IMG/VR virus record: IMGVR_UViG_3300022868_000009
Location: 186,001 to 250,000 of that record
Strand: one strand, 5' to 3'
DNA length: 64,000 nucleotides
The position numbers and the translations under genes are program-made. The first letter of the stretch is position 1, and every line of letters begins with the position of its first letter. The notes under the pieces are model-generated. The model was not told the DNA's origin. It worked only from the letters and a program-made list of their open reading frames with translations, and did not search any database. Of this stretch, positions 1,782 to 58,808 are shown one piece after another.

Positions 1782-2972
1782 TTAAATTAAATTTCTCAAA
1801 TGATAATTGAAAACTAACTTAACCTCTTCTGAATATTTTTTTGGATATACTACAGAATCATGAATAGTAAAGATCTTAATGTGTGGATATTTCTTTGCAA
1901 TATCGCTCACAACCTTACCATAAATAAAATCACTTTCCATTCTCTGCAATTTATGACTCAACGATTTATAAGTATCGTCTAAACTTTTTAATTCTTTTAT
2001 ATACTCTAAAACACTCGGGTATAATTCACCAAAAATGTTATTTTCTCTGTTTCCATTATTATTTCCAAATAAAACCTTAAACATCATCAACTTAGCATCA
2101 GTCCTTGTTTTAAGTTCAAGTGGAAATCTTTCAGTAAATTCATCATATATTAAACCATTTTTAACAATATCAATAAATCTTATAACTTCTTCATTTAATT
2201 CATCTATCTCTTGTTTTAAATATAAACCAAAAAAGAAAGGTTGTGAATTTTTAATATCAACTTCATCAACAGGCTCACCATCAATCTTCAAAAATCTATT
2301 TCTAATTTCTTTTTTAAGTATCGTAAAATTAGTGTGCATTCTACCATAACCATCAAATTTAAAAAATATATTGCCTGTTTGTATTCCATCGACACTATTA
2401 TGATTACGTAAATATTTACTATTCTCCATTTCACCATTTTCCCATAAATCATCAATATAATCTATCGACTTTTGATAATCTATCTGTACATAATATAAAT
2501 AATCAATTAATTTCTTTCTAATTTCAATATCTATTGGACTATTAACATAGGTTGTAAATGATCTCTCTAAATAATCCTTTTGATATTTTTTCATTAAGAT
2601 TTTATCATCAACCACACATTTAGTTATTTCTAAGTCTGTTATATTTAATTTATATGTTTTGGCTTTTTTTGAAACATAATAATTAGAGACCAAAGTCATA
2701 AATCTTTTTTCAATTAAATAATTAATATAATAATTATAATATTTTCCATATTTATTTCTTAATAATACAGACCATAAATTAAATTTAACTTCATTAGTAA
2801 AAAAATATTTTATTACTAACTCATGAATTATATTTATTAAGTAATCTGTTTTTAAATTAATACCATTATATGGTATCTTCTTTATTCCAGTTAAATATTC
2901 ATATTCTTTTGGAATAAATTGATATAAATATTGTCTATCTTTTGGTAAAATTATATTTGTTTTATGGAACAT
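1782..2972 (-). CDS. Minimal family-A (PolA/T7 RNAP-fold) polymerase-like protein
   Basis: GRMHT, motif A-like DIKNSQP, motif B-like RTDAKLMMFKVLFG, LQRMES and motif C TIHDS; no exonuclease domain. Confidence 0.7.
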   Translation of the reverse strand: MFHKTNIILPKDRQYLYQFIPKEYEYLTGIKKIPYNGINLKTDYLINIIHELVIKYFFTNEVKFNLWSVLLRNKYGKYYNYYINYLIEKRFMTLVSNYYVSKKAKTYKLNITDLEITKCVVDDKILMKKYQKDYLERSFTTYVNSPIDIEIRKKLIDYLYYVQIDYQKSIDYIDDLWENGEMENSKYLRNHNSVDGIQTGNIFFKFDGYGRMHTNFTILKKEIRNRFLKIDGEPVDEVDIKNSQPFFFGLYLKQEIDELNEEVIRFIDIVKNGLIYDEFTERFPLELKTRTDAKLMMFKVLFGNNNGNRENNIFGELYPSVLEYIKELKSLDDTYKSLSHKLQRMESDFIYGKVVSDIAKKYPHIKIFTIHDSVVYPKKYSEEVKLVFNYHLRNLI

Positions 2973-3167
2973 TAATGAAATTATTTTTTCTTTTGAATTT
3001 AAATTATTATTTTAGAAAAGTTTATGGTTAAATTCTTAAGATGCATCAAAAGCTATTTCCACATGAAACGAAGATTTGGTGCAAAATTATGATAGTATTC
3101 TAATTAATTAATTTTTTTCTTTAAGAAAATTTTCTTATTTTAGAAGAACATTAAAACGAAAAAAATT

Positions 3168-3758
3168 ATGGATGAAAATATAAAAAAATCATTAGAATCT
3201 TTAAGTAAATCTATTTGTTCAAAACTTGTAGATAAAAATATAAATTTAGATGAATTAATTTCTAATCATTTATCAACTATTAAATTGCTTTATCCTGATG
3301 TTGAAAATTTAGAAAAAATATTTACTGATATTGTTCTTAAAGAATCAAAAAAGTATTATGAATCAAAGAAATTTAAAGTAAGATGTATAAAAACACATAA
3401 TACATTTTCACATAAATATAATAGAGGTTCAATTTATACTGTAATTGATGAATTTAAACAAGTTGGTATACATAATAATGATGATGAAGAACATTATTAT
3501 AAAATTAAAGATGATAATAATAAAATTGTATTAGTTGAGCCAAATCATTTTATTAAAATTGAAGATGAAGAAAGTTTAGCAGATATGAAAATAGAATATG
3601 TAGATGATGAATTAATAATTTCTACTTATGATGGACAAGCATTAAAAATAGAAAGAAAAAATATTGATATTTTTTTAAGAGAATTACATAAATATTCTTC
3701 ATCGTATATTAAAAATGATAAATTAGAAAAAACTTTAATATTTTTTGAAAGTAAATAA
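3168..3758 (+). CDS. Hypothetical protein
   Basis: 196-aa ORF after early-type promoter at ~3135. Confidence 0.6.
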   Translation: MDENIKKSLESLSKSICSKLVDKNINLDELISNHLSTIKLLYPDVENLEKIFTDIVLKESKKYYESKKFKVRCIKTHNTFSHKYNRGSIYTVIDEFKQVGIHNNDDEEHYYKIKDDNNKIVLVEPNHFIKIEDEESLADMKIEYVDDELIISTYDGQALKIERKNIDIFLRELHKYSSSYIKNDKLEKTLIFFESK

Positions 3759-5125: not shown

Positions 5126-5497
5126 TTATCCAGCTCTACCAGGTTTGTGAAGAGTAGTGAAACGTTTCCATTGACTTATGAAATCAGGTTTACTATTAGT
5201 TTTAGCTATTTCCGATTCTTTCTTGTTCTTTTCTCTTTCTCTTCTATTTCTCTCAATGGTTGATTTAGTATCAGATTTTTCTTTTTTATCAATTTTTTCA
5301 TCTTCTTCATCAAGTAAATCTATATCATCTTCATGAAGATCAACTACACCAGCATCACTAACTGTATCTTTACTAGGAGCACCAGTTTGACCTGCACCAA
5401 ACCAATTAGAATTACCATCTAATCTATTATTTGCAGTATTAGATTGATCTAATGGAACATTATGTTGCCATTCTAAATAAAATTTTAAATGTTTCAA
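5126..5497 (-). CDS. Putative internal virion protein (MKHLKFYLE tag)
   Basis: TTG start, TATATA motif at 5516-5525, tag motif. Confidence 0.6.
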   Translation of the reverse strand: MKHLKFYLEWQHNVPLDQSNTANNRLDGNSNWFGAGQTGAPSKDTVSDAGVVDLHEDDIDLLDEEDEKIDKKEKSDTKSTIERNRREREKNKKESEIAKTNSKPDFISQWKRFTTLHKPGRAG

Positions 5498-5560
5498 AAC
5501 TATTTTAATTTTAACTTATATATAAAAAACACACAAAGGAAATTTAAAAATTATTAATTT

Positions 5561-5785
5561 ATGAGTATATTTATTGTTACTTATTTAAGTAAATCAAAAA
5601 AACCTCAAACGAAAAAATTTACAACATCAGCTAATTCTAGTGATGATGCGTCTTTTAATTTTAGAAAATCTGGAATTAAATATTTAAAAGTTTTCAACAT
5701 TAAAGAATCAACATCAAACTGTTTAGGGAATATTTTTCCTGATTTACAAAATCTTAAAGATAAATTAGAAAATGAAGAAAATTAA
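5561..5785 (+). CDS. Hypothetical protein
   Basis: ORF overlapping next gene. Confidence 0.55.
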   Translation: MSIFIVTYLSKSKKPQTKKFTTSANSSDDASFNFRKSGIKYLKVFNIKESTSNCLGNIFPDLQNLKDKLENEEN

Positions 5786-6065
5786 AATCAATTTTACATT
5801 AATAATAGCAATATTAAACACATTTGCTTTTATAATTAATCCACTATCTATTATAGGTCTAGTAAATTTATTTTTTGCAATTTACTTCATAAGAAGCGTT
5901 TATAAACATTATAGGAAAAAATATGTGGAAAAAATTACTATTAAAAAGAAAAAAGAAGAAGAATTTGTGAAAAATTTTAGAAATTCAATAAAAAAACACA
6001 AAAAATTCGAAAAAGAATATGATTATATCAAAATTGATAAATCACCCGTTGAATTTAGAAATTAA
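5772..6065 (+). CDS. Small membrane protein
   Basis: Two N-terminal hydrophobic segments, basic tail. Confidence 0.55.
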   Translation: MKKIKINFTLIIAILNTFAFIINPLSIIGLVNLFFAIYFIRSVYKHYRKKYVEKITIKKKKEEEFVKNFRNSIKKHKKFEKEYDYIKIDKSPVEFRN

Positions 6066-6968
6066 TTTAGTAACTAATTTACTTCCTGAATTTGTCAAAC
6101 TAAATAACTTATTATCATTTTGATCTATTAATCCACGGTGATATAATTCAATTATATTATTAACTAATTCTTTAAAATCTAATTTATGTAAATATAAATC
6201 ATTTTTTAAAAATGATATTTTTCTAGGTTTAATATATAGTTTATATAATATTGCAAATTCTAATTTTGTCACCTTATTTGAACTATACACAAATCTTTCA
6301 TATAGAAATTCTACATGAAATTCTTCATTATTTCTAAATATTTTCATTATTAAATTGTCGAATTTATTTTTAATCTTATTAAAAATATCAGTTCCATAAT
6401 ATTTTAAACCAACTAAAGTAGCACCAACTCCAGTTAAGGTTACAGATTTTAAAAATTCTACTAAATTTATATCATTTATATTTACATCTACTAAAACACT
6501 AATAAAAGGTACTAATAAAATAGAATAAATAAATAAATCTCTTATTCCTTTTATAACTTTACCAAAATTACTAGCTAATATAGAAAATAATTTTTTTACA
6601 TTTTTTATAACATCAATAATCATTTTTAACAATTCATCTAAGCCTTTTTCATTAATAATTAATTTTGCTTTATGAATAGAATTTTTATTTTCTTTTAATA
6701 AAATTGCTAAAGCTGTTATTGTTAATAAAATAATATCAAAAACTCTTAATTCATATCCTGTATTCTTAATAATACTCTCAATAAAAGGGTAAAAAGCAGT
6801 AACGGATGTACCAAAAGTGGCTATGAAATAATAATTTAAACCTATTTCTTTAATTACATTTTTTTGTTCTTTTTGCCAAGTTGAAATTTCTCTTTTTTCA
6901 AATAATTTATACAGAATCTCACTTTCATTATCTTCATTATAACTTTTATAAGAATTAATATGTTTCAT
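6042..6968 (-). CDS. Multi-pass membrane protein with virion-tag N-terminus (MKHINSYKSYNE)
   Basis: About 4 hydrophobic helices; TAATATATAG just upstream. Confidence 0.65.
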   Translation of the reverse strand: MKHINSYKSYNEDNESEILYKLFEKREISTWQKEQKNVIKEIGLNYYFIATFGTSVTAFYPFIESIIKNTGYELRVFDIILLTITALAILLKENKNSIHKAKLIINEKGLDELLKMIIDVIKNVKKLFSILASNFGKVIKGIRDLFIYSILLVPFISVLVDVNINDINLVEFLKSVTLTGVGATLVGLKYYGTDIFNKIKNKFDNLIMKIFRNNEEFHVEFLYERFVYSSNKVTKLEFAILYKLYIKPRKISFLKNDLYLHKLDFKELVNNIIELYHRGLIDQNDNKLFSLTNSGSKLVTKLISKFNG

Positions 6969-7076
6969 AATATCTATATATTATTTTTTTATTTATAAAA
7001 AATTTTCTATATTGAATTAGGAAAATAAAGAAAAAAGGAAAAATTCAACCTTATTTAAATTTAAAAATATAATTAG

Positions 7077-7931
7077 ATGGCAGAAAAATTCAATTTTACT
7101 AAAACATATGATAAAGATAATATTTTTAACACATTAAACAATTTAAAAATATATCAACAAGGCAACTATATTATCACCAATTATAAAGGTAGACCTATCA
7201 GTGAAACAAAGGTGACAAATAAATATCAAATTTTTGACTTTTCTTCATTTGCAAAAGAAATTGTTGGGGAAGTTGAAAATTATTTTACCCCAGAAACATA
7301 TAAACTAAGAATAAGAAAAGGTATTCAAGAACTCAGATTAATTGGCGAAGAAGTTTATATAAACGGTGAACAATATCATAAAATGTTAAATATTTTAAAC
7401 TCAACAGATAAATCAAGAGCATTACAATTAAATATTGGTCTTATTAGATTTATTTGTACAAATGGTGTAATTGCGGCAGTTGAAGACGAATATACAGGTT
7501 TTAAAAATAAACACTATAAATCATCATTGCCTGGTGCTGTTGAAGATTTTATGAAAAACCTTAACAAATTCAATATTATACTTGATAAACAATCAACTAT
7601 AATTGAAAGTTTATCAACAAATATAATTTCATTACAAGAATTAGCTGCAAAGTTAACTTTAGATGAACATGGTGTTATCAAAGAAAACAGACTTCTTAAA
7701 TTGAAATCTTTTACTAAAAAATTATTAACTTCAAAAACAGATAAATTAAATATTAAACTGTTAAACGAAGAACAAATTAAACTATTAAATTATCCTGAAA
7801 TATTTCAATCTACGAAAGTTGATATCGAAATACCAGCTTATCAAGCGTTTAATAACTATACAGAATTATTCAGAGAATATGATAGTTCAGTAATTAAAAG
7901 AGAAACAAATAGAATATTAGAATTAGTATAA
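7077..7931 (+). CDS. DUF932/DUF945-like protein
   Basis: NS.D.S and RFICTNG motifs typical of this family. Confidence 0.65.
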   Translation: MAEKFNFTKTYDKDNIFNTLNNLKIYQQGNYIITNYKGRPISETKVTNKYQIFDFSSFAKEIVGEVENYFTPETYKLRIRKGIQELRLIGEEVYINGEQYHKMLNILNSTDKSRALQLNIGLIRFICTNGVIAAVEDEYTGFKNKHYKSSLPGAVEDFMKNLNKFNIILDKQSTIIESLSTNIISLQELAAKLTLDEHGVIKENRLLKLKSFTKKLLTSKTDKLNIKLLNEEQIKLLNYPEIFQSTKVDIEIPAYQAFNNYTELFREYDSSVIKRETNRILELV

Positions 7932-8072
7932 AGAATTTTTGAAAAAATTTGTATTATTTTCAACTTTTAAATATATTTATAATATATAATAGAATGTTTT
8001 TTAACAAAAAAGAATTATAAAAAATATCATTAATTTTGTTATTGGCATTGTAACTAAAAAACAAAAAGTTTT

Positions 8073-8669
8073 ATGGGAAAAAATAAACATGAAGTCAAAT
8101 TCAAAGAAGCAACTGGACAAGAATTTTCTAAATTTTATCAAGATCAAATGCCTAGATTAACTTGGCATCTTTCAAATTATACAAAAGATTTTGAAGTAGC
8201 AGAAGATTTTGCAAATGACGCATTTGAACAAGCCTTAAAAAAAATTGAAACTTATGATAAAAATAAGTCTCAAATTCAAACTTGGTTATACACAATTGCT
8301 AGACACATTGTTATTCAATCTTGGAATAAAAAGCAAAAAATGCCATCCGTCTCAATTGATAAAGAATATGACGTAAACCTTTCATTAAGTACTTTTTTAC
8401 CTTATGAAGATGGAAAAGAAGATTTAGAAAAGTATAATACTTATGTTGAAAAGGCTAAGATTATAAAAGAAGTTATTAAAAATCTTCCTCCTAAATACAA
8501 AGAAGTCATGGAATTAAGAGAATTAGATAATATGCAATATAAGGAAATTGCGAAGTATCTTAAGAGAAACGAATCTACTGTTAAATCTCAAATTCGAAAA
8601 GGACGTGAATTAATAAGAGATAAAGTGCAGAAAAAATTCGATTACATTGATAAACATGGACTGGAATAA
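8073..8669 (+). CDS. ECF-type RNA polymerase sigma factor
   Basis: Region 2 AEDFANDAF...TWLYTIARH; region 4 LPPKYKEVMELR...YKEIAKYL...STVKSQIRKGR. Confidence 0.9.
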   Translation: MGKNKHEVKFKEATGQEFSKFYQDQMPRLTWHLSNYTKDFEVAEDFANDAFEQALKKIETYDKNKSQIQTWLYTIARHIVIQSWNKKQKMPSVSIDKEYDVNLSLSTFLPYEDGKEDLEKYNTYVEKAKIIKEVIKNLPPKYKEVMELRELDNMQYKEIAKYLKRNESTVKSQIRKGRELIRDKVQKKFDYIDKHGLE

Positions 8670-8678
8670 CCCAATATT

Positions 8679-8706
8679 AAAGAGCCTTGTTTTTACAAGG
8701 CTCTTT
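8679..8706 (+). terminator. Intrinsic terminator
   Basis: AAAGAGCCTTGT-TTTT-ACAAGGCTCTTT perfect 12-bp stem after sigma gene. Confidence 0.85.
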
Positions 8707-8738
8707 CTACTTAAACTTATTAATAAAATTAACATATA

Positions 8739-8948
8739 ATGAGTAATATTTCGAAAGAAAATAAAAAATTAGCTAAAAACTGGTTTATAAAAAACATTGA
8801 TAAATATAATCTATCAACTTGGGATGATGAAGATGATTCATACAAATTATTTGAAGATCTACATAAAGATACAAGCATTAATTATGAAGATAAATTATAT
8901 TATAGAGAAGTTTTTACATTAGCCATGAAAATAAAAGATGAAATATAG
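8739..8948 (+). CDS. Hypothetical protein
   Basis: ORF in overlapping gene run. Confidence 0.55.
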   Translation: MSNISKENKKLAKNWFIKNIDKYNLSTWDDEDDSYKLFEDLHKDTSINYEDKLYYREVFTLAMKIKDEI

Positions 8949-9273
8949 AGTTTTTAAAGAAAGTATAGGATGGAGTGAAGGTTTATTTATATTTCCATTT
9001 GAAATTAAATTTAGTGAAATTAGTAATTTTCCACAAACACATTTTATATGTAAAGATAATTATTTAGGAGAATTTACATTTGATTTAAAATTTTTAAAAA
9101 TTTTAAATCAAGGTAAAATTAATGATAAAACTTTTTGGTTTGAATATTTGTTCGAACATGATTCAGATGATTCAATTAAAAACAAAAAAGAACCTTTAAT
9201 GAGAGAAGAACCTAAAATTGTCCCTAAAATAGTTCCTAAAAAGCAATTACCTGAAAATGAAAGTCTATTTTAA
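8938..9273 (+). CDS. Hypothetical protein
   Basis: ORF, TAATG coupling to next gene. Confidence 0.6.
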   Translation: MKYRVFKESIGWSEGLFIFPFEIKFSEISNFPQTHFICKDNYLGEFTFDLKFLKILNQGKINDKTFWFEYLFEHDSDDSIKNKKEPLMREEPKIVPKIVPKKQLPENESLF

Positions 9274-9614
9274 TGTGTAAAGTTGTTCATTTTAAAAAAG
9301 ACAATTATGATATTTATATTGGTCGTTTACCTAATGATGAATATAATAAATGGTCTTATCCAAAATGTTTATCTGAACAAATGTCAGGTGTTACAAGAAT
9401 AGAGAAAATAAATGCTTATGAATATTATTTAATTAATAATGAAGAATTGATGAATAATTTACATGAACTTAAATATAAAACTTTAGGATGTTGGTGTAAA
9501 GACAAAGGAGGCGGAGGTAAAAAATGTCATGGAGACATAATTAAAAAATACGTAGATAAATTAGAACTTAAAGATAAACAAAAAAATCTTAATTATAATG
9601 ATTGGGATTTTTAA
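9273..9614 (+). CDS. DUF4326-family protein
   Basis: YDIYIGR ... LGCWC ... CHGD motifs. Confidence 0.8.
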   Translation: MCKVVHFKKDNYDIYIGRLPNDEYNKWSYPKCLSEQMSGVTRIEKINAYEYYLINNEELMNNLHELKYKTLGCWCKDKGGGGKKCHGDIIKKYVDKLELKDKQKNLNYNDWDF

Positions 9615-9692
9615 AGAAAAATGATTTGGAATTGATTTTTTTTAACAAAAAAATTTAGTATTTTAGTAATAGGTAAAAAAAAAGAATGATAT

Positions 9693-10085
9693 GTGATGAA
9701 CAAAGATAAAATAATACCTACTCACAATGGTTTAGAAAGAATAAGAACATATACAATAGAAGAAGTTTTTAAATGGATTGACGATAATCCAAGAAAAACA
9801 TACTGGGAAGACGGAGAATATAGGATTAAAATGACACGAGCAAAAATTTTTAAAAAGAAAGGATTAATTTGCTCTATATGTGGGCTCGAAGGACTCTATT
9901 TTATATTAGAAAAAGATAAAGGCGGTGGTATACACTTAGATTTATATGGTTTAGAAAATGAAGTTGAAATATTACTCACAGTTGACCACATAATTCCTAA
10001 ATCTAAAGGTGGTATAAATAATATAATAAATTATCAAACCATGTGTAAATATTGTAATGAATTAAAATCAGATGATAACTTTTAA
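9693..10085 (+). CDS. HNH endonuclease
   Basis: CSIC ... TVDHIIPKSKGG...NYQTMCKYCNELK. Confidence 0.85.
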   Translation: MMNKDKIIPTHNGLERIRTYTIEEVFKWIDDNPRKTYWEDGEYRIKMTRAKIFKKKGLICSICGLEGLYFILEKDKGGGIHLDLYGLENEVEILLTVDHIIPKSKGGINNIINYQTMCKYCNELKSDDNF

Positions 10086-48991: not shown

Positions 48992-49966
48992 ATGAAAATA
49001 TATAAATTTAATTCTTTTATATTTGAAAAAAGTTCTCTAACTTCAATTGGAATACCAAATGAAGTTCTTAAACAAATTCAAATAGATTACGAATTACCAC
49101 ATAATATAAAATGGGAAGAACTTACATTTTCAAACACCATCAAATCATCACTAGAAAATGATGACAAAAATCTATATATTGAAATAAATAAAGAAGGCAC
49201 TAAAGTAAACGTAATAACATCAATAAGAAAAAATAAAAAGAAAATCTACATATTAGACGAATATAAATATAATTTCGGATGGGAAAAATCAGAAAGAATT
49301 GATATAACATTCGCACCAATTGTACAAAAAATGTCATTTAAAAGTATATATTATCACTGTGAATCTAAAAACTTTAAACTCACATCCAAAAAAGAAAGAT
49401 CACTTGAAAATATAAATGTCCAATATGAAAATTTTAATACACAATTTAAAAAAGACTTTACTAACAAATTCATAAGTATAATTAAAAAAGATAAATATAA
49501 TCTACTAGACAATACTATAAAAGAAAACGGTCTAACAACATTTGATGAATATTTATATGATTTTGAATCACAATGTTCAGAAGAATTAAAAAGATATTTA
49601 ACAATTAAAGAACTTATTTCTAGATATGGTAAAGATAAAATATTTAGATCATTTATGTATTTCATTAAAACAAATAACTTAAAATTATTTGAATCAAATA
49701 CTTCATTAAAACAAACAATAAGTTTATTCGTTGACGATTATTGGTATGCAATGGACGAATTAGAAGGAGTATTACATGACTTAGGATATAAAAGAATGAG
49801 TGATAGTGGTAAAGATGTTCTTTTTGTAGAAAAAGAAGGCGAAACTAGATTATATTGGTACGGAAAAGCTTTTGAAATTAAAAATGAACCACATTATAAA
49901 ATGCCAGAAGACTGGGCAACTTTTGTTAAAGAAATAACACAAAATTTTGAAGATATAAAAATATGA
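48992..49966 (+). CDS. Putative virion protein (MKIYKFNSFIFE tag; internal LKLFES)
   Basis: Start revised; TTAATATATAG a few nt upstream. Confidence 0.65.
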   Translation: MKIYKFNSFIFEKSSLTSIGIPNEVLKQIQIDYELPHNIKWEELTFSNTIKSSLENDDKNLYIEINKEGTKVNVITSIRKNKKKIYILDEYKYNFGWEKSERIDITFAPIVQKMSFKSIYYHCESKNFKLTSKKERSLENINVQYENFNTQFKKDFTNKFISIIKKDKYNLLDNTIKENGLTTFDEYLYDFESQCSEELKRYLTIKELISRYGKDKIFRSFMYFIKTNNLKLFESNTSLKQTISLFVDDYWYAMDELEGVLHDLGYKRMSDSGKDVLFVEKEGETRLYWYGKAFEIKNEPHYKMPEDWATFVKEITQNFEDIKI

Positions 49967-50175
49967 AACATATAAAAACTTTTGAACAACATGCTGCAGA
50001 TTATTATGAAGGAGAAACTTCATCTTCACCTTCAGGACCAGTTAAAATGAACTGTCCTAATTGTGGTAATGAAATGAATGTAATGTTCCATGAAATTAGT
50101 CCAAAACCAATCACTTGTGAATTTTGTGGTGATAAAATAGAATATCCATATGGTCAAAGTTGGCGTTGGGCATAA
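49963..50175 (+). CDS. Zinc-ribbon protein with virion tag (MKHIKTFE)
   Basis: CPNC...CEFC. Confidence 0.7.
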   Translation: MKHIKTFEQHAADYYEGETSSSPSGPVKMNCPNCGNEMNVMFHEISPKPITCEFCGDKIEYPYGQSWRWA

Positions 50176-52621: not shown

Positions 52622-52912
52622 ATGGCAAAAATAAATACAGAATATATTCATTTTATACTAGAACAGTTTGAAAAAACATTTGAAGAAAAACTTTATGATG
52701 TATATGTAGGACATAAAAAAACCAGTGATGATGACAAGGATGTCAAAATCTATACTGCAAAACCAGAAGAATGGGAACAAGTCATTGATACATTATTAGA
52801 AAAAGGTGTAAATCTAGAAGAATATGAACTATGTTCAAAAATACAAGGATTAAAACCTAAAGTATTGGAAGAAGCAAAGAAAAGACTTGAACAAAAAGAA
52901 AATATAGATTAA
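52622..52912 (+). CDS. Hypothetical protein with UVR-like motif
   Basis: LEEYELCSKIQ. Confidence 0.55.
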   Translation: MAKINTEYIHFILEQFEKTFEEKLYDVYVGHKKTSDDDKDVKIYTAKPEEWEQVIDTLLEKGVNLEEYELCSKIQGLKPKVLEEAKKRLEQKENID

Positions 52913-53566
52913 TTATCTACTTAATAAACCTATTTTAGAATAAACATTTTTCCAATCATCCTCATTGTTTATTATATATTCAGGTTCTCTGGAATCTAAA
53001 ATAGTTTCAGCATTTTCAATTGTTACATAATCAACGGCTTTTATTTTAATTCCATCATTAATTCTAACTCTATAAGTTTTAAATGTTTCACTCAAAATTT
53101 GTGCTATATATAAAGGAAAAGTACCATCATCAATATACATAACAGCAGAAAGTTTTGCATTTGGCATCTCAACGTACAACTTATTCTCTGTATCTATCAA
53201 ATGATATTTGGATAAGCTTTCTTTAATTCCGTTATGTTTAATAACATCACTATTCTTAACATAATAATAAGAATCTGTAGAAGTTTCTTTAAAAACTAAT
53301 GATGCATCAATTTTTTTACAGAATTGATTTAACATTTTTCTTTGAAAATTGCCTTTATCTAATAAATTACTATTAATTAATCCACTAAACTTATATTTAT
53401 CTTCTAATATAACAACAATTTTTCTATTTGCATTATCATAATACAAACAATCTATATCCAACATATAATTAGATCTAGATAAACTTCTATGTCCTTCAGA
53501 AAAGACATTACTTTTACCCCATTTTCTTTTATAATCTTCAAATATGTTTTTAATTCTTTGTATCAT
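52913..53566 (-). CDS. Hypothetical protein, possible PD-(D/E)XK fold
   Basis: DID...ILEDK; overlaps the 3' end of the CCA gene. Confidence 0.5.
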   Translation of the reverse strand: MIQRIKNIFEDYKRKWGKSNVFSEGHRSLSRSNYMLDIDCLYYDNANRKIVVILEDKYKFSGLINSNLLDKGNFQRKMLNQFCKKIDASLVFKETSTDSYYYVKNSDVIKHNGIKESLSKYHLIDTENKLYVEMPNAKLSAVMYIDDGTFPLYIAQILSETFKTYRVRINDGIKIKAVDYVTIENAETILDSREPEYIINNEDDWKNVYSKIGLLSR

Positions 53567-54857
53567 TACTCATATATTCATTTTTAAATCTTTCGTATTC
53601 TATTCTTCTCATTTCTTCACCTAAAGCCTTTCCATGAAATCCCTTTTGCATTAACTCTTGTGAATTTTTTAAAAAACCATCACTACAATATTTAATGAAA
53701 GCTTCAGTTATATTTGAATATAATCCCTGAGACTTAGTATATAATCTTAATATATTATCATCAATACCAAATCTAGTCTTATTTTTAGCTAACTGATAAA
53801 TATTTGTCATCCACATATCACCTGTAGATTCTTCTATTATCTTTTTCTCATAATTAAATAGAAAAATAATATAATCAATCAAATTATTTTGCAACTTACA
53901 ATCAATTAATTTGTTGGTTAAATTCGAATCATCTGAACTTGGAGTCATCAAAATAGGTAAAATTATCCTATTATCGAAAAGTGAAAAATTCACCCAAGGA
54001 ACCTCTATTTTAATTCCAGGGAAAATCTCATCAAACATATCAAATTCATCAAGTAATCTTAAATATTTAATAAACATAGACATATCATTTGCATCTCTCG
54101 CATGACCTAACATTTTATTCCATTCACCATTTTTAGTGTCAAATATTCTTTCAAATGAAACATCATCTTTCTCAGATATTCCATGTAATCTATGATCCAT
54201 AGTTAATGCATTCTTTACATTTTCACTTATTTTACCATTAGTTCTTGCACAAAATCTAAACAATCTTAATATTCTCAATCTATCTTCATTAAACCTTTCA
54301 TAAGGTTCACCAACAGTTTTAATAAGTCCTTTCTTTAAATCTTCAATACCACCAACATAATCAATGATTTTCTTACTACCAAGATCATAAAACATTGCAT
54401 TAATTGTTAAATCTCTTCTTAAAACATCATCTTGTATTGTAACATTTGAACCAATTTCTACTTTTTGATCATCACCTTTAACATCTCTACCTTTAGCAAT
54501 ATCTTTTCTATAGGTTGCTAATTCATGACCTAATGGTTCTAAATCTGTATAAATTCTTAATACTCCAAAATTTTGTCCTTGCTCTTCTTCAGAAACATAA
54601 CCACCATTCCAATCTTCTAATATCTCTTTAGATTCATCTGGCATTGCATCTGTAACTAAATCAAAATCTTTAGGTTTTTTTCCTTGTAAATAATCTCTAG
54701 GAGCGCCACCTACAACATATAATTCCTTACCATACTTTTTAAATCTTTCATATATTTCTACAATATCTTCGGGTATGAACATATCTTTAGCTTTAACAGT
54801 TTTCTTTTGCATTTTATTTTCATTTAAAAATTCAGAATATTTATACAATTTATTCAT
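53550..54857 (-). CDS. cca: tRNA nucleotidyltransferase (CCA-adding, class II) with virion-tag N-terminus
   Basis: VGGAPRD, DFDLVT, RRDLTINA, EDRLRILR; MNKLYKYSEFLNE; TTAATATATA upstream. Confidence 0.9.
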   Translation of the reverse strand: MNKLYKYSEFLNENKMQKKTVKAKDMFIPEDIVEIYERFKKYGKELYVVGGAPRDYLQGKKPKDFDLVTDAMPDESKEILEDWNGGYVSEEEQGQNFGVLRIYTDLEPLGHELATYRKDIAKGRDVKGDDQKVEIGSNVTIQDDVLRRDLTINAMFYDLGSKKIIDYVGGIEDLKKGLIKTVGEPYERFNEDRLRILRLFRFCARTNGKISENVKNALTMDHRLHGISEKDDVSFERIFDTKNGEWNKMLGHARDANDMSMFIKYLRLLDEFDMFDEIFPGIKIEVPWVNFSLFDNRIILPILMTPSSDDSNLTNKLIDCKLQNNLIDYIIFLFNYEKKIIEESTGDMWMTNIYQLAKNKTRFGIDDNILRLYTKSQGLYSNITEAFIKYCSDGFLKNSQELMQKGFHGKALGEEMRRIEYERFKNEYMSNDTKN

Positions 54858-54877
54858 GACAATATATATTAAATTAA

Positions 54878-54906
54878 AAAACCATCGTTTAAATTACGAT
54901 GGTTTT
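54878..54906 (-). terminator. Intrinsic terminator after phoH
   Basis: AAAACCATCGT...ACGATGGTTTT. Confidence 0.8.
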
Positions 54907-54924
54907 ATTATAAGACATTATTTA

Positions 54925-55671
54925 TTAATCTTTTAAATCATATCTTTGTAAAATTCCTGCAATTATAGGATTTCTAACAATATCTTCAGGTCTATCTACT
55001 ATAAATTCATAAACTCCAACACCTTTAGCACCTTTCATTAAAGTGAATGCGTCATATAAACCACTACTATTCTTTTTATTATACCTATCAGTTTGTTCTA
55101 AATCACCACTAATAATAAATTTACTATTAAAACCAATTCTAGTTAAAACAGTTTTCATTTGTTTTGGTGTACAATTCTGTGCTTCTTCAAATATTAAAAT
55201 ACTATTATCTATATTCCAACCTCTTAAATAAGCTAAAGCTAAAGGTTTAATTATTTCAGATTCAACTAATTTTTTTCTATTTTCAATGCCTATTATTTTG
55301 TCAATAAGTTTATAAGTTGAATATAAATAAGGTTCTAATTTATCTTCTAAATCACCAGGTAAATAACCTAATTTCTCTTCTGATTCAACAGCTGGTGTAA
55401 TAATATAAATATTATGATAATTGTTAGAAGAATCAGCTAATAATTGTAATGCCTTAATTATACTAATATAACTTTTTCCTACACCGGCAGGTCCTATACA
55501 AATTGATATTTGATTACTATCAATTATTTTTATAAAATCTTTTTGTTTTTCATTTTTACATCTAATCTTAACTTTTTTGCCATATAATATATCTGCAAGT
55601 TGTTTATTATTTAACAACTCTTTATCTTTACTTTTTACATTTAATTTTGTTGTTATTATTGGTTTTCTCAT
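54925..55671 (-). CDS. phoH: PhoH-family ATPase
   Basis: GPAGVGKS, LGYLPG, RG, EEAQN, LTRIG, GDLEQ. Confidence 0.93.
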   Translation of the reverse strand: MRKPIITTKLNVKSKDKELLNNKQLADILYGKKVKIRCKNEKQKDFIKIIDSNQISICIGPAGVGKSYISIIKALQLLADSSNNYHNIYIITPAVESEEKLGYLPGDLEDKLEPYLYSTYKLIDKIIGIENRKKLVESEIIKPLALAYLRGWNIDNSILIFEEAQNCTPKQMKTVLTRIGFNSKFIISGDLEQTDRYNKKNSSGLYDAFTLMKGAKGVGVYEFIVDRPEDIVRNPIIAGILQRYDLKD

Positions 55672-55874: not shown

Positions 55875-56108
55875 ATGAAATATTTAAAGACATACGAAGA
55901 ATTAACCGATTCACAAAAAGAATCTGAATATAATAAAAAATTAGAAGAACTAGAAGATAAAAAAGAAAGACTTCAGAAAAAACTCCAATATTCAGAAGAT
56001 GTAAGAGATCCAGAAAAAACAGAACAAATAAGAAAAGAAAAGAAAGAAGAAATTGAAAAGAATAAAAAGAAAAAGAGTTCTGAAGATCAAAACTCTTTTG
56101 TATCCTAA
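55875..56108 (+). CDS. Putative internal virion protein (MKYLKTYEE tag)
   Basis: TTAATATATA upstream; charged coiled coil. Confidence 0.65.
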   Translation: MKYLKTYEELTDSQKESEYNKKLEELEDKKERLQKKLQYSEDVRDPEKTEQIRKEKKEEIEKNKKKKSSEDQNSFVS

Positions 56109-58511: not shown

Positions 58512-58808
58512 TTAATCATCAAATTGTGTGTACTCATTAGGTTGATTCAATAAACCTAAACTTTTGTAAATACACACTTTATTATTATCAATATAATATT
58601 TATCATAAGACGTAAAATTACATAAACTTATAAAAGATTCAAACCAAACCTCTTTTCCTGTAATAATATCATTTAATTCAATTGTTATCATCTGATTTTC
58701 TTCAATTAAATTAATATCAATGTCAAGATCTTCAAAAAAATTATATAAATTTGATTTCAATGAAACATACTGTGTTTCATTTATAAATTGATTAAATTTT
58801 GTTTTCAT
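58512..58808 (-). CDS. Putative virion protein (MKTKFNQFINE tag)
   Basis: Tag; coupled to upstream genes. Confidence 0.6.
   Translation of the reverse strand: MKTKFNQFINETQYVSLKSNLYNFFEDLDIDINLIEENQMITIELNDIITGKEVWFESFISLCNFTSYDKYYIDNNKVCIYKSLGLLNQPNEYTQFDD

Follow-up and report, generated by a model that had tools for sequence, protein, structure and literature searches.

An N-terminal tag resembling the T4 capsid targeting sequence on a predicted tRNA nucleotidyltransferase of a giant uncultured phage

A predicted tRNA nucleotidyltransferase of a giant uncultured phage starts with a 13-residue tag that matches the signal with which phage T4 loads proteins into its head. The tag is not private to this gene. 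At least 31 of 482 ORFs in the 345-kb phage fragment start with the same tag, where about 0.04 are expected, and 28 more start with a related one. Head loading and removal of the tag after Glu13 are therefore the best-supported reading of this N-terminus, with a probability of about 0.55, whereas injection of the enzyme into the host and tRNA repair by a pre-packed enzyme remain inferences. The gene lies in a window of 64,000 nucleotides (positions 186,001 to 250,000 of IMG/VR record IMGVR_UViG_3300022868_000009), whose features are collected in Table 1.

Table 1 Features in and around the tagged gene (positions of the 64,000-nucleotide window)
Position	Strand	Feature	Remarks
53550..54857	-	Gene for a class II tRNA nucleotidyltransferase (CCA-adding type)	435 aa
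54819..54857	-	Codons 1-13, N-terminal tag MNKLYKYSEFLNE	Y7, F10, L11 and E13 correspond to T4 CTS positions 4, 7, 8 and 10; cleavage predicted after E13
54783..54818	-	Codons 14-25, Lys-rich linker NKMQKKTVKAKD	Between the tag and the conserved start of the enzyme (MFIPEDI); contains Met16, and Met26 follows directly; either is a putative internal start
54660..54713	-	Motif A of the catalytic head domain	GGxxRD ... DxD
54863..54872	-	Promoter-like motif TTAATATATA	5 nt upstream of the ATG; spacing predicts a leaderless or near-leaderless mRNA
54873..54906	-	Intrinsic-terminator-like hairpin plus U-run	11 bp, 7-nt loop; downstream of phoH
54925..55671	-	Upstream phoH-like ATPase gene	Untagged
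52913..53566	-	Downstream ORF	217 aa; overlaps the end of the CCA gene by 17 nt, so probably co-transcribed; no family match
58512..58808	-	Tagged ORF	MKTKFNQFINET; highest tag score in the genome
48992..49966	+	Tagged ORF	MKIYKFNSFIFEK; 324 aa; promoter-like motif 5 nt upstream
55875..56108	+	Small ORF with related N-terminus	MKYLKTYEE-type; TTAATATATA 23 nt upstream
52622..52912	+	Tagged ORF	MAKINTEYIHFILEQ; 96 aa
23672..24121	-	ORF with related N-terminus	MKYLKKFENF
49963..50175	+	Small ORF with related N-terminus	MKHIKTFEQH; 70 aa; directly downstream of the tagged ORF at 48992-49966

Every feature given in the preliminary description, namely a class II enzyme with an N-terminal extension, a motif a few nucleotides upstream and a terminator after phoH, is present in the sequence. 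The Pfam PolyA_pol head domain covers residues 46-179 (103.7 bits), and the PHROG match is tRNA nucleotidyltransferase (3.3e-45). Residues GG50-51, R54, D55, D64, D66, RRD147-149 and E191/D192/R195 are invariant in 55 homologs, and the GGxxRD, DxD, RRD and EDxxR motifs are all found. The AlphaFold model, built from an alignment without two rows from annotated-record loci, has a mean pLDDT of 88.5 and a pTM of 0.86. A Foldseek search matched it to full-length class II CCA-adding enzymes (3H37-3H3A, 6Q52 and 1MIV) at TM 0.55-0.60, in agreement with the head-neck-body-tail architecture of tRNA nucleotidyltransferases. The assignment as CCA-adding is nevertheless an interpretation, as sequence does not separate CCA-adding from poly(A) polymerase activity.

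The N-terminal extension comprises about 24 residues. Solved cellular enzymes align from query residue 23-33 to their own residues 4-19, so about 13-24 residues are extra. Occurrence of the same N-terminus in cellular homologs had been set beforehand as a result that would refute the virion-cargo reading; the solved cellular homologs lack it. Residues 1-14 are the only low-confidence N-terminal part of the model, where they are detached and hold a short helix at 7-12. The tag starts at Met1, which is the first start codon after the upstream stop.

We asked how often this N-terminus recurs. With a position-specific scoring matrix (PSSM) trained only on this genome, 31 ORFs reach a score of at least 12 at the N-terminus, against one internal hit in about 91,000 positions. 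A regular expression that disregards the Met matches 21 ORFs against 1.06 expected, and the 28 related ORFs start with MK[YH]LKT[YF]xE. The tag is thus a generic label on at least 12% of the ORFs, which include a NUDIX hydrolase, an RNase H, a DeoC aldolase and many proteins with no family match. It is spread across the lineage as well. LR745206 has 29 tagged ORFs in 400 kb against 0.24 expected, and many genes of two 634-642-kb relatives, including neighbours of the CCA orthologs, carry it; tagged proteins of relatives include GH108 and PPK2. About 90 of the 120 closest CCA homologs are tagged. About 10 orthologs do without the tag; these are scattered through the tree next to tagged sisters, and one of them sits in a phage whose neighbouring genes are tagged, which indicates that the tag is modular. 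Conservation is in the spacing of amino acids and not in one nucleotide string. The AT-rich Tenacibaculum phage PTm1 (30% GC, 313 ORFs) has no ORF at or above 12.

The tag conserves the four positions ([YF]-x-x-F-[IL]-x-E) that experiments mapped in the capsid targeting sequence (CTS) of T4, MKTYQEFIAE, in which residues 4 and 7 direct targeting and residues 8 and 10 direct processing at the gp21 site (L/I)-x-E (PMC9026906). In the 64 unique tags of the CCA family the corresponding positions are Y/F in 100%, F/Y in 98%, I/L/V in 97% and E in 84%. When the matrix trained on this phage was used to scan 252 T4 ORFs, gp61.1, ipIII, ipII and ipI ranked first to fourth. Against a head-loading tag, the top match, gp61.1, is not a known head protein.

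An inspection of the head genes indicated a T4-type module. The major capsid protein (MCP) matches PF07068 (85 bits), the portal matches phrog_213 (1e-64) and the protease matches phrog_207 (1e-29). The protease aligns with full-length T4 gp21, and the catalytic residues (H85, S140), the His in "DHP" and the Ser in "VSSR", are conserved. In favour of a head-loading tag, none of the T4-core homologs carries it; against it, the MCP propeptide has no clean [LI]xE site near the expected cleavage point. The protease is fused to a scaffold in a protein of 811 aa, which holds 13 of the 42 internal [YF]xx[FY][ILV]xE sites in the proteome, most of them in a 14-aa tandem repeat (YSEYIAEN...), and 29 [LI]xE sites against 12 expected. 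Two tag-bearing relatives have 11 copies of the pattern each, while tagless PTm1 has none. The CCA tag core YSEFLNEN ranks 10th of about 95,000 positions against a profile built only from the scaffold repeat cores, but this 8-column profile enriches N-termini only about 3-fold, and a 14-column profile of the full repeat does not retrieve them above chance. The link between tag and scaffold therefore rests on the count of the 7-residue pattern and on its co-occurrence with tags across four phages.

The upstream motif TTAATATATA occurs 12 times in the window against 3.3 expected, and none of 100 dinucleotide shuffles reached 12. Genome-wide, AATATATA lies within 60 nt upstream of 91 ORFs against 9.8 expected. 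It is found upstream of the gp4, gp13, gp17, gp21 and gp23 homologs, that is 5 of the 6 units that hold homologs of T4 structural genes, and it precedes 44% of tagged ORFs against 22% of untagged ones (p = 6e-4). A search with T4 gp55 found no late sigma factor of that type in the fragment, a negative that is uninformative at 48% completeness, so "late" is an interpretation that rests only on motif sharing. The terminator-like element between the phoH stop and the motif, with the hairpin and U6 at 54906-54878 (-), has a centroid energy of -12.9 kcal/mol and a z-score of -2.3.

All the above suggest the following explanation. The phage is a roughly 700-kb "Mahaphage"-type phage from salt-lake metagenomes, and among sequencing runs only DNA runs from salt-lake and marine metagenomes were found to hold the sequence. 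The gene encodes a class II tRNA nucleotidyltransferase with an intact catalytic core, most likely CCA-adding, whose first 13 residues are one copy of a lineage-wide address tag that would work like the T4 CTS. In this view the tag helix docks the newly made enzyme onto the prohead scaffolding core, itself built from tandem copies of the same [YF]xx[FY][ILV]xE pattern, and the capsid shell closes around the core. The gp21-type protease would then cut after the Glu of the pattern, dismantling the scaffold and removing the tag after Glu13, and the mature enzyme, starting at Asn14, would stay in the head with the DNA. By analogy with T4 internal proteins and CTS fusions, it would be delivered into the next host, where it may add or restore 3'-CCA on tRNAs, including those of the phage itself. 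The analysis itself establishes the tag and its statistics, the match to the T4 determinants, the T4-type head genes, the scaffold repeats, the intact catalytic core and the promoter-like motif shared with head genes. Docking, affinity for the scaffold, cleavage, presence and retention in virions, ejection, timing of expression, exact CCA addition and any benefit of arriving pre-made are inferred.

Some observations do not sit easily with this view. Twelve percent of ORFs is far more than the three internal proteins of T4, and the tagged set includes a DeoC aldolase and a NUDIX hydrolase, for which a role inside a capsid is not obvious. Tagged proteins are mostly acidic (median pI 5.2), whereas the internal proteins of T4 are basic. 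The nearest cultured phages by capsid protein, Tenacibaculum PTm1 and PTm5 at 27% identity, have neither tags nor a CCA enzyme, so no published proteome can be transferred.

The preliminary description had proposed a late, tagged virion cargo, packaged and injected so that tRNA 3' ends can be restored before phage gene expression, and this interpretation is only partly supported. A recurrent phage-specific tag with the residues of the T4 CTS, a T4-type head module and an upstream motif shared with structural genes speak for it. However, the tag had been treated as a special feature of this enzyme, which it is not, and delivery and a role before phage gene expression are inferred. The ordinary job of the enzyme remains equally possible, as 32-33 of the 35 phage tRNA genes found lack an encoded CCA and would need it added.

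The T4 CTS and the tag described here have much in common. Both sit at the extreme N-terminus, are about 10-13 residues long, have an aromatic residue and a Phe three residues later followed by I/L and Glu, are shared by otherwise unrelated proteins, and occur in a phage with gp20, gp21 and gp23-type head genes; the genes tend to be small, diverse and often clustered. Here, however, the tag is on at least 31-59 ORFs of a half-genome and on sizeable enzymes, one to four extra residues precede the aromatic, and the scaffold is fused to the protease and consists of tandem copies of the pattern. In the giant phages phiKZ, 201phi2-1 and SPN3US (PMC5694885), large heads also carry dozens of internal proteins, including enzymes such as virion RNA polymerase, which a gp21-like protease trims and which are ejected into the host. 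Those propeptides are mostly 80-275 residues long, are cut at A/S/G-x-E and share no short consensus tag, and that lineage is unrelated to this one in capsid sequence. The CCA-adding enzymes of jumbo phages, viewed as RNA-repair factors (Iyer et al. 2021, PMC7824862), are likewise class II Pol-beta nucleotidyltransferases of large phages that carry many tRNA genes. The cultured-phage enzymes found here (from Aeromonas, Vibrio, Agrobacterium, Brevundimonas and other phages) align only from residue 15-47 onward, most from 26-47, so the tag lies outside the alignment, and no packaging signal has been described for them. The T4 late promoter is a single -10-like element, TATAAATA. Like it, the motif described here is a short A/T-only element with no conserved upstream hexamer or -35 and lies upstream of head and neck genes, but its sequence differs ((T)TAATATATAA), it precedes about a quarter of all ORFs, its spacing to the ATG is bimodal (5-7 nt or 16-25 nt), and no gp55 or gp33 homolog was found in the fragment.

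A wider reading is possible but tentative. The largest known phages (the Mahaphage lineage, 630-735 kb) might use a T4-like label of 12-14 residues, copied from the repeat unit of their own scaffold, to load dozens of different proteins into the head and deliver them with the DNA. The cargo would be a pre-made starter proteome with RNA- and nucleotide-handling enzymes such as a CCA-adding enzyme, NUDIX hydrolase, RNase H, DeoC, PPK2 and a GH108 lysin, and the CCA enzyme would let the phage restore or complete tRNA 3' ends from the first moments of infection. What giant phages carry in their heads besides DNA is largely unknown, because none of this lineage is cultured. If the tag is a head-loading signal, the virion cargo could be read directly from genome sequence, at about 60 candidates per half-genome, which would turn an open question into a list that metaproteomics or prohead reconstitution can test. 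It would also extend the CTS principle from three small anti-restriction proteins to whole enzymes of RNA and nucleotide metabolism, suggest that maintenance of the translation system can be delivered rather than expressed, and provide a natural short tag with a matching repeat scaffold for protein encapsidation.

The strongest alternative, which we consider less likely, is an ordinary cytoplasmic CCA-adding enzyme that matures and repairs tRNAs during infection. The tag would then serve another function, such as expression or translation of leaderless mRNAs, binding to a chaperone or another intracellular assembly, or regulated removal by a protease. Only 2-3 of the 35 tRNA genes encode CCA, CCA enzymes are common RNA-repair genes of jumbo phages with no packaging known, tagged proteins include metabolic enzymes, and some orthologs lack the tag. 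In addition, 22 genes have the promoter-like motif only 5-7 nt from the ATG, so 5' coding sequence could matter for initiation. But this reading does not explain why the tag keeps the four CTS determinant positions, why the internal proteins of T4 rank so high in a scan of T4, or why the prohead scaffold repeats the pattern only in the tag-bearing phages. A link to leaderless mRNAs was rejected, because tagged ORFs occur with the motif at 5-7 nt, at 16-25 nt or without it, in proportions similar to untagged ORFs.

It is more doubtful still that the protein, tagged or not, is a poly(A) polymerase or another class II nucleotidyltransferase (A-adding or CC-adding). The best sequence hit among solved structures is E. 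coli poly(A) polymerase I (PAP I; 96.6 bits, against 87.5 for the human CCA enzyme), and the best NCBIfam model is the pcnB subfamily, with every NCBIfam model below its cut-off. Whole-chain fold similarity, however, is lower to PAP I (TM 0.49) than to CCA-adding enzymes, the PHROG families are annotated tRNA nucleotidyltransferase, and the phage carries many tRNA genes without CCA. The EDxxR motif and a low-confidence loop between motifs A and B are present, but these features do not exclude PAP. Finally, an origin of the N-terminal similarity without shared function, as a by-product of AT-rich codon usage (the genome is 25% GC, and K, N, Y, F, I and E all have AT-rich codons) or of recent duplication of a few paralogs (some MKYLKTYNE-type ORFs lie in tandem arrays and could be paralogs), is contradicted by the internal rate of the pattern, which predicts about 1 N-terminal case and not 21-31, by the absence of the tag from PTm1, a phage of the same host phylum, and by the unrelated families of the tagged proteins (PolyA_pol, NUDIX, RNase H, DeoC, GH108 and PPK2).

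The window encodes a 435-aa ORF that starts MNKLYKYSEFLNE. It carries the Pfam PolyA_pol head domain at residues 46-179 (103.7 bits) and matches phage tRNA-nucleotidyltransferase families (phrog_2244, 3.3e-45). In an alignment of 55 homologs, several signature residues of class II nucleotidyltransferases are invariant, namely GG50-51, R54, D55, D64, D66, RRD147-149 and E191/D192/R195. An AlphaFold model built on that alignment is confident (mean pLDDT 88.5, pTM 0.86) and matches the full-length CCA-adding enzymes of Thermotoga, Planococcus and Geobacillus at TM 0.55-0.60, whereas it matches E. coli poly(A) polymerase at TM 0.49. The three DNA features given in the preliminary description are real. 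The sequence TTAATATATA lies 5 nt before the ATG, an 11-bp hairpin followed by a U-run lies between the phoH stop and that motif (centroid energy -12.9 kcal/mol, z-score -2.3), and phoH is the upstream gene. Downstream, an ORF that overlaps the end of the CCA gene by 17 nt has no Pfam or PHROG match, although by eye it shows a D...(E/D)xK-like motif (DIDC...ILEDK), suggestive of a PD-(D/E)xK nuclease fold.

The window is part of a 344,634-bp viral contig with 25% GC that is estimated to be 48% complete, and the sequence is found in salt-lake and marine metagenomes. The major capsid protein is 64% identical to that of the 735-kb uncultured phage LR756501 and about 50% identical to those of the 634-642-kb phages. 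The best hits of the CCA enzyme in the phage database are the same 634-642-kb phages. Therefore this is a member of the largest-genome phage lineage known. Several ORFs have lipoprotein or secretion signal peptides that end in ...FSQ or ...SC, a style typical of Bacteroidota, which would be consistent with a Bacteroidota host.

The contig has a T4-type head module, with a portal (phrog_213), a prohead protease (phrog_207) that forms the N-terminal 200 residues of an 811-aa protein, and a gp23-type capsid protein (PF07068, 85 bits). The protease part aligns with the whole of T4 gp21, and the His of 'DHP' and the Ser of 'VSSR', the catalytic H85 and S140, are conserved. The equivalent gene of the cultured relative PTm1 is annotated as 'prohead core scaffolding protein and protease'. 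Homing-endonuclease genes flank the capsid and protease genes, and the terminase large-subunit homolog is split in two pieces by an inserted ORF.

Coordinates of the features in the window, on the whole viral contig and in phage T4
Feature	Sequence	Coordinates	Strand
Class II tRNA nucleotidyltransferase gene, likelier CCA-adding	window	53550-54857	-
Promoter-like motif upstream of the CCA gene	window	54863-54872	-
Met16 and the following Met26	window	54783-54812	
217-aa ORF overlapping the end of the CCA gene	window	52913-53566	-
Tagged 96-aa ORF starting MAKIN	window	52622-52912	+
811-aa protease-scaffold protein	contig	5467-7902	-
Homing-endonuclease genes (phrog_3339/559)	contig	1788-3440, 8010-9752 and 134669-135655	
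Terminase large-subunit homolog, two pieces	contig	134077-134601 and 135625-137952	
tRNA gene clusters (four)	contig	36-42 kb, 112-116 kb, 164-166 kb and 313-322 kb	
tRNA-Lys with encoded 3' CCA	contig	115149	
tRNA-Arg with encoded 3' CCA	contig	316891	
tRNA genes with anticodon CTA (two)	contig	112614-112688 and 140629-140701	
ORFs with lipoprotein or secretion signal peptides	contig	30-34 kb and 47.9-49.2 kb	
Gene 61.1	phage T4 NC_000866	18966-19130	

Solved cellular enzymes align from query residue 23-33 to their own residues 4-19, and the phage enzyme therefore has about 13-24 extra residues. Residues 1-14 are the low-confidence part of the model and hold a short helix at 7-12. The decisive observation is that unrelated neighbouring ORFs in the two relatives start the same way, with MIIKKYIRFLES, MRLKKYNQFIKES and MKHLKRFNEEL. 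Of the 482 ORFs we called on the contig, 21 have [KRTNSQE][YF]xx[FY][LIF]x(0-1)E within the first seven residues, whereas the internal rate of the pattern predicts 1.06. An iterated position matrix finds 31 ORFs at a score of 12 or more at the N-terminus, while only one internal position in about 91,000 reaches that score. A further 28 ORFs start MK[YH]LKT[YF]xE. The first 400 kb of LR745206 hold 29 tagged ORFs against 0.24 expected. Two controls set the background, as the 30%-GC Tenacibaculum phage PTm1 has no ORF at that threshold among 313 ORFs and T4 has one.

The tagged proteins with a recognisable family are this enzyme, a NUDIX hydrolase, an RNase H and a deoxyribose-phosphate aldolase, which scores above its NCBIfam cut-off, and, in relatives, a GH108 muramidase, a DHH-like protein and a PPK2 kinase. 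Most tagged proteins are small and have no family match, and several lie in tandem arrays. No homolog of a T4 core structural gene carries the tag. The tagged 96-aa ORF opens with the same five residues as the cleaved propeptide of the T4 vertex protein gp24 (MAKINELLRE), which may be coincidence.

Of the 120 closest homologs of the enzyme (42-82% identity, several of them on contigs of 130-620 kb), 90 carry the tag, about 18 have weaker variants, and about 10 start directly at the conserved 'xIPxDI' that opens the enzyme. On a tree built without the N-terminus, tagless and degenerate forms are scattered, each next to a tagged sister, and well-supported branches force at least 10 changes. One truly tagless ortholog sits in a phage contig whose neighbouring genes are tagged. 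The tag is thus a separable module that has been lost repeatedly. A Met just before the conserved start of the enzyme recurs in many homologs, and tagless orthologs begin near it. An internal start that gives an untagged cytoplasmic isoform is conceivable, as T4 genes 17 and 21 have internal starts.

[quoted passage not shown] Mutational mapping put targeting at residues 4 and 7 and processing at residues 8 and 10. The four conserved positions of the tag have exactly that spacing, with [YF] (100%), F/Y three residues later (98%), I/L/V (97%) and E two residues after that (84%). In this enzyme they are Y7, F10, L11 and E13. We scanned the whole T4 genome with the matrix trained only on this contig, and the four best of 252 ORFs were gp61.1, ipIII, ipII and ipI. 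The uncharacterised 54-aa protein gp61.1, which starts MKTFKEFIKED, scores higher than the T4 internal proteins themselves. It may be an unrecognised CTS-bearing protein, or a warning that the motif is not exclusive to head cargo.

The pattern [YF]xx[FY][ILV]xE occurs internally 42 times in the whole predicted proteome, and 13 of these are in the protease-scaffold protein. Most of the 13 sit in a 14-residue tandem repeat (YSEYIAEN-DKNIA), of which about 11 copies, two heptads each, occupy a scaffold-like region at residues about 290-460, followed by a Q-rich, acidic stretch. The repeat is conserved in the 634- and 642-kb relatives. The protein also has 29 [LI]xE sites against 12 expected. The protease-scaffold proteins of the two tag-bearing relatives have 11 copies of the pattern each, while that of tagless PTm1 has none. 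The CCA tag core YSEFLNEN differs from the repeat core YSEY[IL]AEN at two of eight positions, and against a profile made only from the repeat cores it ranks 10th of about 95,000 positions. However, that profile enriches N-termini only about 3-fold, and a profile of the full 14-residue repeat gives no enrichment. The scaffold link is therefore treated as suggestive, and it rests on the shared pattern and on its co-occurrence with tags in four genomes.

The upstream motif AATATATA lies within 60 nt upstream of 91 ORFs against 9.8 expected, and no second conserved element lies upstream of it. The spacing to the ATG is bimodal, at 5-7 nt and at 16-25 nt. The CCA gene is one of 22 genes on the contig in the short class, which predicts leaderless or near-leaderless mRNAs, and the CCA orthologs in LR745206 and LR756502 show a similar TATAT-N4-5-ATG arrangement. 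The motif precedes the homologs of T4 gp4, gp13, gp17 (first part), gp21 and gp23, but neither the portal gene nor the two non-structural homologs that were found. It is twice as frequent before tagged ORFs as before untagged ORFs (44% against 22%, p = 6e-4). On sequence evidence alone this fits a late, T4-like single-element promoter, although the motif also precedes about a quarter of all ORFs and no gp55 homolog was found in this half-genome.

All the above confirm the observation of a class II enzyme with an N-terminal extension and its own upstream motif, preceded by a terminator-like hairpin after phoH. The proposal that the enzyme is a tagged, late-made virion cargo is partly supported, and it is the best-supported explanation for the tag (probability about 0.55). 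While the tag, its recurrence and its agreement with the T4 determinants come directly from the sequences, head loading, tag removal and late synthesis are inferred by sequence logic only, and injection and tRNA repair before phage gene expression are extrapolations from T4. Five points count against this reading, namely the scale of the tag, at 12% or more of ORFs, the metabolic nature of some of the putative cargo, the acidic charge of the tagged set, the weak result of the scaffold profile, and the fact that the best T4 match, gp61.1, is not a known head protein. We found no paper in the literature searched that links a capsid targeting sequence to huge phages. In this view the T4 CTS principle, itself already known, would be expanded to dozens of proteins and to whole enzymes in the largest phages.

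An ordinary role of the enzyme is compatible with packaging. The contig carries 35 tRNA genes, and only tRNA-Lys, tRNA-Arg and perhaps tRNA-His encode a 3' CCA. A tRNA nucleotidyltransferase is therefore useful during infection regardless of packaging, and CCA enzymes are already regarded as common RNA-repair genes of jumbo phages. Poly(A) polymerase activity is the less likely assignment, but sequence models do not separate it from CCA addition. The best PDB sequence hit is E. coli PAP I, and every NCBIfam model scores below its cut-off. 'CCA enzyme' is therefore the likelier label for a function that is predicted and not proven. Two tRNA genes on the contig, outside the window, have the anticodon CTA and are amber suppressors, labelled Pyl by ARAGORN. 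TAG still ends 41 of the 482 called ORFs. Partial TAG recoding, for example of some late genes, is possible.
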